A stretch of DNA of 63,643 nucleotides, counting the filler, from Olpidium bornovanus S191 (Eukaryota; Fungi; Olpidiomycota): NCBI GenBank assembly GCA_017911155.1. It is 30 parts of 30 records of this genome, joined end to end, with 100 filler letters (N's around TTAATTAATTAA, not from the genome) between each part and the next. Parts side by side here need not be neighbours in the genome. Positions count along the whole stretch, not along the records: positions 52,179 to 53,229 come from JAEFCI010003129.1; 29 more parts are not named here. The stretch is one strand, 5' to 3'. The position numbers and the translations under genes are program-made. The notes beneath the pieces are model-generated. The model did not search any database and was not told where the DNA came from. It saw only the letters and a program-made list of their open reading frames with translations. This document shows positions 52,179 through 52,408 of this stretch, piece by piece (the first letter of the stretch is position 1; each line of letters starts with the position of its first letter).

Positions 52179-52382
52179 CCCAGCCCAGATCCCGCCCCGG
52201 CTCCCGCCCCGGAACCCTGGAAGAAGGGCTACGGCGGTTACGGGAAGAAGGGATACGGCGGCGGATACGGGAAGAAGGGATACGGCGGCGGATACGGGAG
52301 GAAGGGATACGGCGGATACGGAAAGAAAGGCTACGGCAAGGGCAAGGGTTACGGGAAGGGCAAGGGCAAGGGATACTACTGA
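52179..52382 (+). CDS. 3' end of a Gly/Tyr/Lys repeat-peptide precursor (N-terminus off the contig)
   Basis: Translation from 52179: PSPDPAPAPAPEP-WKKGYGGYGKKGYGGGYGKKGYGGGYGRKGYGGYGKKGYGKGKGYGKGKGKGYY*. All four Gly codons and both Lys codons are used, so the repeat is conserved at protein level. AATAAA follows 21 nt after the stop. Confidence 0.85.
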   Translation, partial: PSPDPAPAPAPEPWKKGYGGYGKKGYGGGYGKKGYGGGYGRKGYGGYGKKGYGKGKGYGKGKGKGYY

Positions 52383-52402
52383 GCTGCGCTTACGGACGCA
52401 TG

Positions 52403-52408
52403 AATAAA
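52403..52408 (+). terminator. Polyadenylation signal AATAAA of the Gly/Tyr/Lys peptide gene
   Basis: AATAAA in an AT-rich tract just after the TGA at 52380-52382. Confidence 0.55.

Follow-up and report, generated by a model that had tools for sequence, protein, structure and literature searches.

A strongly transcribed Gly/Tyr/Lys repeat gene cut by a contig edge in Olpidium bornovanus, with a candidate cross-linkable polycation as its product

The gene end at the edge of the contig

The window analyzed here is a stretch of 63,643 nucleotides from Olpidium bornovanus S191 (GCA_017911155.1), and the piece under study occupies its positions 52179-53229 (JAEFCI010003129.1). On the + strand, translation of the gene fragment at 52179-52420 in frame 1 gives exactly what an earlier note on this DNA had described, that is an X-Pro run, a tryptophan, four KK/RK-GYGG(G)YG units, a GYGKGK tail, a stop codon and AATAAA. 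The X-Pro segment, P-SP-DP-AP-AP-AP-EP, and the Trp that follows it are encoded by 52179..52220, and their 5′ side is cut by the contig edge. Then come the four repeat units (52221..52322), as delimited by translation, tandem-repeat analysis and codon pattern: KKGYGGYG (52221-44), KKGYGGGYG (52245-71), KKGYGGGYG (52272-98) and RKGYGGYG (52299-322). The C-terminal tail, KKGYGKGKGYGKGKGKGYY, is encoded by 52323..52379; in this tail, single Lys residues alternate with Gly and the end is Tyr-Tyr. The stop codon, TGA, lies at 52380..52382. It is followed by the 3′ UTR (52383..52439, with AATAAA at 52403-08), whose extent is given by contig ends and by a drop in read depth. The remainder of the piece (52440..53229), where depth is low or zero, lies outside the gene and is apparently non-coding, G+C-rich and indel-polymorphic. 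The ORFs of this downstream region have no Pfam match above the cut-off, and Rfam gave no match. A scan for bacterial promoters and terminators is irrelevant here, the locus being eukaryotic.

The mechanical ORF list omits frame 1 because this frame runs off the edge of the piece. Tandem Repeats Finder delineates two arrays, one with a 24/27-nt period at 52219-52337 (85-86% matches) and one of the GGCAAG type with a 6/18-nt period at 52332-72. Across the repeat, all three + frames and one − frame are open, so that openness alone does not single out frame 1. Codon use in this frame is one-sided, with TAC for the 12 Tyr, AAG for 13 of the 14 Lys and a GC3 of 0.78. Moreover, the four units differ from one another at third codon positions (GGC/GGA/GGT/GGG), the sole exception being a K/R change (AAG/AGG). 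Among the variants of the coding part, 52300 G>A, which converts the single Arg into Lys, is present in runs X5 and X8, and 52355 G>C is synonymous. 52381 G>A, at about half depth in X1 and X2, changes TGA to TAA and retains the stop. This last variant is linked to 52399 (C>A) and 52409 (one T fewer), the three being seen at about half depth in X1, X2 and X5, which points to a pair of alleles, or of near-identical gene copies, with about equal expression.

Some run contigs depart from the reference further downstream. In X1 and X2, 40 nt are inserted at 52504 and the 122 nt of 52545-52666 are skipped; in X3, these 122 nt are retained, with 10 extra nt at 52664. The differences at 52504-52667 look like insertion/deletion polymorphisms of a non-coding spacer. 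The ends of the 122-nt skip read GC..AG if shifted by one base; a less favored alternative is that 52545-52666 would be an intron of the rare GC-AG type, in a + strand transcript with weak expression. Finally, one X1 contig shares just a 31-nt word with the repeat (52258-52288); on either side of this word, it carries 255 nt of unrelated, pyrimidine-rich sequence. This contig is probably a chimera of the assembly graph.

Transcription, size and family of the gene

Words of the gene were found in runs of studies P1, P2, P15 and P17 under one species label (organism A), as well as under three other species labels (organisms B, D and E) and in one soil metatranscriptome. With several independent studies and several species labels, contamination of a single sample is unlikely. 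The orthologue in organism B lies on a contig that spans 52197-52313 with 4 differences and then runs into a KGKGYGKGYG variant. Summed over words, the depth in X1-X3 reaches 10^4-10^5 for the repeat and 870-2400 for the 3′ UTR; beyond about 52466, depth is 31-40 in X1 and X2, and 0 in X5. Repeat depth represents 100-3000 times the downstream depth, its very high value being partly a sum over paralogues, and the unique 3′ UTR is covered 25-80 times as deeply as the downstream region. At 52439, 31 nt past AATAAA, the contigs of X1, X2 and X5 all end. These contig ends and the position of AATAAA, rather than a tail, make a poly(A) site near 52439 likely. Run X5, the nature of which had been guessed as 'DNA?', covers 52179-52439 alone, at depths of hundreds to thousands, with nothing downstream. 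Since its coverage is confined to the transcribed part, this run behaves like a cDNA library. Two large raw-read RNA runs under the same species label, X20 and X14, gave zero reads, even at 85% likeness. This is a weak hint that expression is condition-specific, X20 and X14 being taken to contain the organism by their species label alone. The locus is a real protein-coding gene end, transcribed very strongly in some conditions. The earlier claim of an unannotated coding sequence is borne out by conservation in frame 1 and by the depth profile; this sequence is transcribed, and the contig edge cuts it.

The size of the missing 5′ part can be approached with contigs from two different studies. 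One of them, from X4, is 230 nt long and starts 140 nt 5′ of 52179; the other, from X5, is 228 nt long and starts 145 nt 5′ of this position. Because they reach just 140-145 nt further 5′, the mRNA would measure about 400 nt and the product would have at most about 115 residues, provided that the contig starts mark the 5′ end. After a normal 5′ UTR, about 15-30 codons would then be missing, which is the size of a signal peptide. That the fragment is the tail of a large protein is less likely, given that the contigs of both studies stop so close to it. A precursor gene had been proposed earlier; a small size, suited to a precursor, is made probable by the reach of these contigs, but the peptide-releasing role that went with the proposal is not supported, as discussed below.

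The gene belongs to a multi-copy family. Ten fragments of family members were obtained from run contigs, each being joined to the window sequence at a stated place and then translated in frame 1. In this frame, hardly any residues other than G, Y and K occur in any of them (GKGYGGYGKGKK, KDYGSYGKGKGYGG, YGGYGKKGYGKK and GYGKGKGYGKGYG are examples). Two of the fragments reach a stop codon, preceded by ...GKAYY in one case and by ...YGFY in the other, and the window copy has ...GKGYY at this place. Unpaired lysines are found in paralogues (GKGYGGYGKG, KDYGSYGKGK, KGKGYGKGYG), and one short form of the family, which ends with ...PEPFPPGGYYGKGKGKGYY before the stop, has no dibasic site at all. Because the lysines of the paralogues and of the tail are single, and because the short form has no KK, selection appears to maintain the G/Y/K makeup and the aromatic end of the protein rather than a cleavage site.

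Composition of the product and search for relatives

From Trp onward, the product comprises 54 residues, with 48% Gly, 26% Lys and 22% Tyr, one Arg and one Trp, and neither His nor Ser. Its pI is 10.1 and its charge +14.7. AlphaFold, run on the single sequence, gives a pLDDT of 57, a pTM of 0.14 and zero secondary structure, and this part is predicted to be a disordered chain. Basic, repetitive and dominated by Gly, Tyr and Lys, it has the composition of the DOPA/quinone-tanned Gly/Tyr/Lys proteins, which are a functional class and not a homology family.

With the 67-residue fragment, Pfam returned nothing, even at E 10, and the profile of plant-type glycine-rich proteins (PF07172 GRP) was not matched at that threshold either. 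A word-index protein search with the same fragment gave nothing at E 0.01 or at E 10, and the exact product is absent from protein records. It should be noted that the composition filters of HMMER may hide true relatives, and that the absence of homologues is weak evidence. An exhaustive search of 1.84 billion cluster representatives returned two matches, P0001 and P0002. The former was rejected as a relative, the match being spurious, with a repeat inserted in a P450-like protein. The match to P0002 (75% identity over 47 residues, E 4.5e-6) is the only significant one. None of the nematode proteins among the 1.84 billion representatives was matched, though the YGGYG motif is present in the window gene. 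Feature neighbours in the Atlas are weak (0.69 at most). The first is an unnamed 154-aa cluster without recorded taxa (0.69), and the nearest named one, second overall, is the oomycete mating-induced protein M96-3 (0.65), below the reliable threshold. A pattern search for paralogues had also been suggested; run with back-translated KKGYGGYGKK over metagenome contigs, it yielded a sole match, which is due to chance. This match is a small ORF on the − strand of L002 (741-857), an AT-rich phage-like metagenome contig; it ends with ...KNKKKGKKKKGYGGYGKKKK before its stop and is unrelated to the window. The strings KKGYGG and GYGKGKG and the Pc-1 decapeptide were not found in the literature. Thus, Gly/Tyr-rich secreted repeat proteins are known, and what is seen here is a Lys-rich, very small, multi-copy version of them, without detectable homologue or literature trace.

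P0002 is a 179-aa protein encoded at 129-668 of the metatranscriptome contig L001, a transcript that looks algal, with a long 3′ UTR and TGTAA near its end. Its signal peptide is evident; KKGYGGGY-type units follow in two modules of four units each, and the protein terminates with KKKGYYYG. In its relatives P0003 and P0006, acidic spacers alternate with basic GYKGGYKKGGGYYKKGY modules. These three secreted metatranscriptome proteins are uncharacterised, and their layout of acidic spacers and basic KKGY-rich modules resembles that of multi-peptide precursors. The top Atlas neighbour of P0002 is likewise M96-3. The P0002 group shares with the window gene the KKGYGGGY repeats and an aromatic C-terminus, the signal peptide being P0002's own. 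In contrast to the window gene, it is built of two or three modules with acidic, non-repetitive spacers between them, it lacks the X-Pro segment, and its units lack the final Gly. The likeness is probably convergent. P0002 indicates that the same design occurs elsewhere, in a secreted protein.

Candidate roles of the product

Our preferred reading, held tentatively and at somewhat less than an even chance, is that the product is an intact, secreted, cross-linkable polycation of a wall, a matrix or an adhesive. A putative signal peptide would be followed by the short X-Pro segment and by the roughly 54 Gly/Lys/Tyr residues, and the protein would be secreted whole, not as excised hexapeptides. 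The lysines would bind it to anionic polymers of the wall or matrix, or to surfaces. The tyrosines would serve as substrates for oxidative cross-linking by a tyrosinase, a laccase or a peroxidase, through dityrosine or through DOPA-quinone coupling to Lys. Animal cement, byssal and eggshell proteins rich in Gly, Tyr and Lys work in this mode, as do, probably, the Tyr-rich spore-wall proteins of oomycetes.

Among these animal proteins, the basic Gly/Tyr/Lys class includes mussel foot proteins 3 and 5, and Pc-1 has a decapeptide repeat. The tubeworm (sandcastle-worm) cement proteins Pc-1 and Pc-2 are basic and highly repetitive, and their Tyr residues are converted to DOPA (PMC4275877). A liver-fluke eggshell protein contains GYGGYG (PMC4014650). 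Like the window gene product, the animal DOPA proteins (Pc-1/Pc-2, mussel foot, trematode eggshell) are small or repetitive, strongly basic and built largely of Gly, Tyr and Lys. They form multi-variant families, and their mRNAs are among the most abundant of the producing cells. In these proteins, Lys-Lys pairs are part of the material and not cleavage sites. However, they have no sequence homology with the window gene, and they are animal proteins, none being described for fungi. Among microbes, the closest parallel is offered by the M96 proteins of Phytophthora, which are secreted, Gly/Ser/Tyr-rich, putative wall proteins encoded by multiple copies in variable number. At one stage of the life cycle, their expression rises by more than 100-fold in parallel with tyrosinase induction, and early assemblies had collapsed their copies (PMC5999078). 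Small Tyr-rich proteins of the oospore wall of Pythium oligandrum are cited in the same article (PMC5999078). With both, the window gene has in common a Gly/Tyr-rich low complexity, multiple copies and breaks in assemblies. M96 nevertheless differs from the window product by its length (about 270 aa), by a His-rich N-terminal third and by Ser in place of Lys, and the window fragment had no HMMER match to it.

Some points weigh against an intact polycation. With cement, eggshell and M96 proteins, the likeness concerns composition and does not reflect homology. The X-Pro run, in exact dipeptide register up to the Trp, fits the pro-region of an active peptide trimmed by a dipeptidyl peptidase (DPP) better than it does a structural protein. 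Lastly, the regular spacing of KK in the four central units is also compatible with processing.

The first of the other explanations starts from this X-Pro register. Stepwise removal of X-Pro dipeptides by a dipeptidyl aminopeptidase is known from promelittin. Here, once the signal peptide is off, a DPP would trim the X-Pro segment as far as Trp-Lys and release the whole 54-residue W...YY polycation as a cationic, glycine-rich antimicrobial. We regard this as unlikely, though it is the best placed of the alternatives. In addition to the register, the product is small, Gly/Tyr-rich and charged at about +15, and it comes from a multi-gene family with a very high and apparently conditional expression. 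The alternation of basic GY/K modules and acidic spacers in P0003 and P0006 is that of a multi-peptide antimicrobial precursor. Moreover, the nematode peptides NLP-24/27-31 have YGGYG as their active motif, and the YGGYG-repeat peptides of the C. elegans NLP-29 cluster are antifungal effectors (PMC11112505). The C. elegans NLP-24/27-31 and CNC genes, which are clustered, resemble the window gene by the YGGYG core, small precursors, multi-gene families and strong induction. On the other hand, their peptides contain Arg or single basic residues and almost no Lys, they are not homologous to the window product, and they belong to another kingdom. More generally, the known Gly/Tyr antimicrobial peptides are Lys-poor. 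The hydrophobic residues of the window product are limited to Tyr and Trp, no amphipathic structure is predicted, and (AP)n segments are also found as ordinary linkers.

Rather improbable, and weaker than the reading of an intact product, is the processing model of the Kex2-processed repeat proteins (KEPs). Cleavage after KK/RK followed by carboxypeptidase trimming would yield GYGGYG twice, GYGGGYG twice and a cationic tail, acting as signal or RiPP-like peptides. The KEP screen of Le Marquer et al. looks for a signal peptide, internal repeats and, between the repeats, KR/RR or, less often, KK sites (PMC6339444). The window gene does contain four GYGG(G)YG units in a 24/27-nt array. These units are near-identical, tandem and short, each being flanked by KK or RK, and the definition used for screening allows KK (PMC6339444). 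An mRNA of this small size would suit a precursor, and X-Pro/X-Ala dipeptides occur as in KEPs. P0002 repeats KKGYGGGY behind a signal peptide, YGGYG is bioactive in nematodes, and the even distances between KK pairs in the central units also suit proteolytic processing. The sites themselves argue otherwise. Of the five dibasic sites in the window, four are KK and one is RK, so never KR/RR; Arg is at P1 in none of them, and KK is a minor Kex2 site (PMC6339444), in agreement with the caveat of the earlier note that KK is a poor one. As the dibasic pairs also seem not to be conserved in the paralogue fragments, where lysines are single as they are in the window tail and where one form has no KK, the release of four short peptides that had been put forward finds these two results against it. 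The STE13 signature of KEPs consists of XA/XP dipeptides directly after the Kex2 site, and is restricted to the alpha-factor type (PMC6339444). It is absent after the sites of the window gene, where GY follows KK at once in each unit. As the X-Pro run comes ahead of the first KK, it could not be trimmed from released units. Nor is the amidation read from Gly residues before dibasic sites expected here: this reaction depends on PAM (PHM/PAL), an enzyme described as missing from all fungi and from oomycetes (PMC6529398). Furthermore, no GYGG peptides were found in the KEP catalogues compared, and peptides of Gly and Tyr alone carry little information for a specific receptor. Secreted peptides with a YGGYG core (GYGGYG, GYGGGYG) cut from this family would amount to a fungal peptide signal for which a counterpart has yet to be described, and this we consider very improbable. 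Were such peptides released, they could act on soil nematodes as a cross-kingdom mimic, since YGGYG is the active core of the opioid-like and immune peptides NLP-24/27-31 of nematodes.

Somewhat less probable than KEP-type processing is an intracellular low-complexity protein devoid of signal peptide. It could be a hydrophilin of stress or dormancy, or a Gly/Tyr condensate domain binding nucleic acids through Lys. The visible part indeed shows no signal peptide, its N-terminus being beyond the contig edge, and expression is very high and apparently conditional. Disorder with Gly/Tyr richness is typical of phase-separating domains, and a GYGGYG peptide is used in studies of this type (PMC10523320). 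Conversely, a Pro-rich segment at the N-terminus and an aromatic C-terminal end are reminiscent of secreted proteins, the sole sequence relative, P0002, is secreted, and Lys replacing Arg or Ser would be unusual in a phase-separating domain.

Finally, the idea that the locus is not a gene, but a non-coding minisatellite open by chance or a contaminant, is largely refuted and scarcely credible: the three open + frames, the lack of homologues in large protein libraries and the two RNA runs of the same species label without reads would fit it, but conservation is specific to frame 1, with the stop kept and YY or FY ends in paralogues, the depth profile is that of a transcript ending after AATAAA, and the sequence recurs in three related species and, under the one species label, in four or more independent studies.

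Short, repeat-rich and highly expressed genes get lost at contig edges, and the gene described here is one of them. If the family is as it appears, its transcripts would be among the most abundant of the organism in some conditions, and yet gene models lack it, since the assembly breaks at its repeats, and no homologue of it could be detected among 1.84 billion cluster representatives. The alternative meaning would be a new glycine-rich antimicrobial. On the reading that we prefer, that of an intact polycation, a secreted Gly/Tyr/Lys protein would be a candidate wall-hardening or adhesive material for this fungus, of a type so far found in animals and, loosely, in oomycetes.
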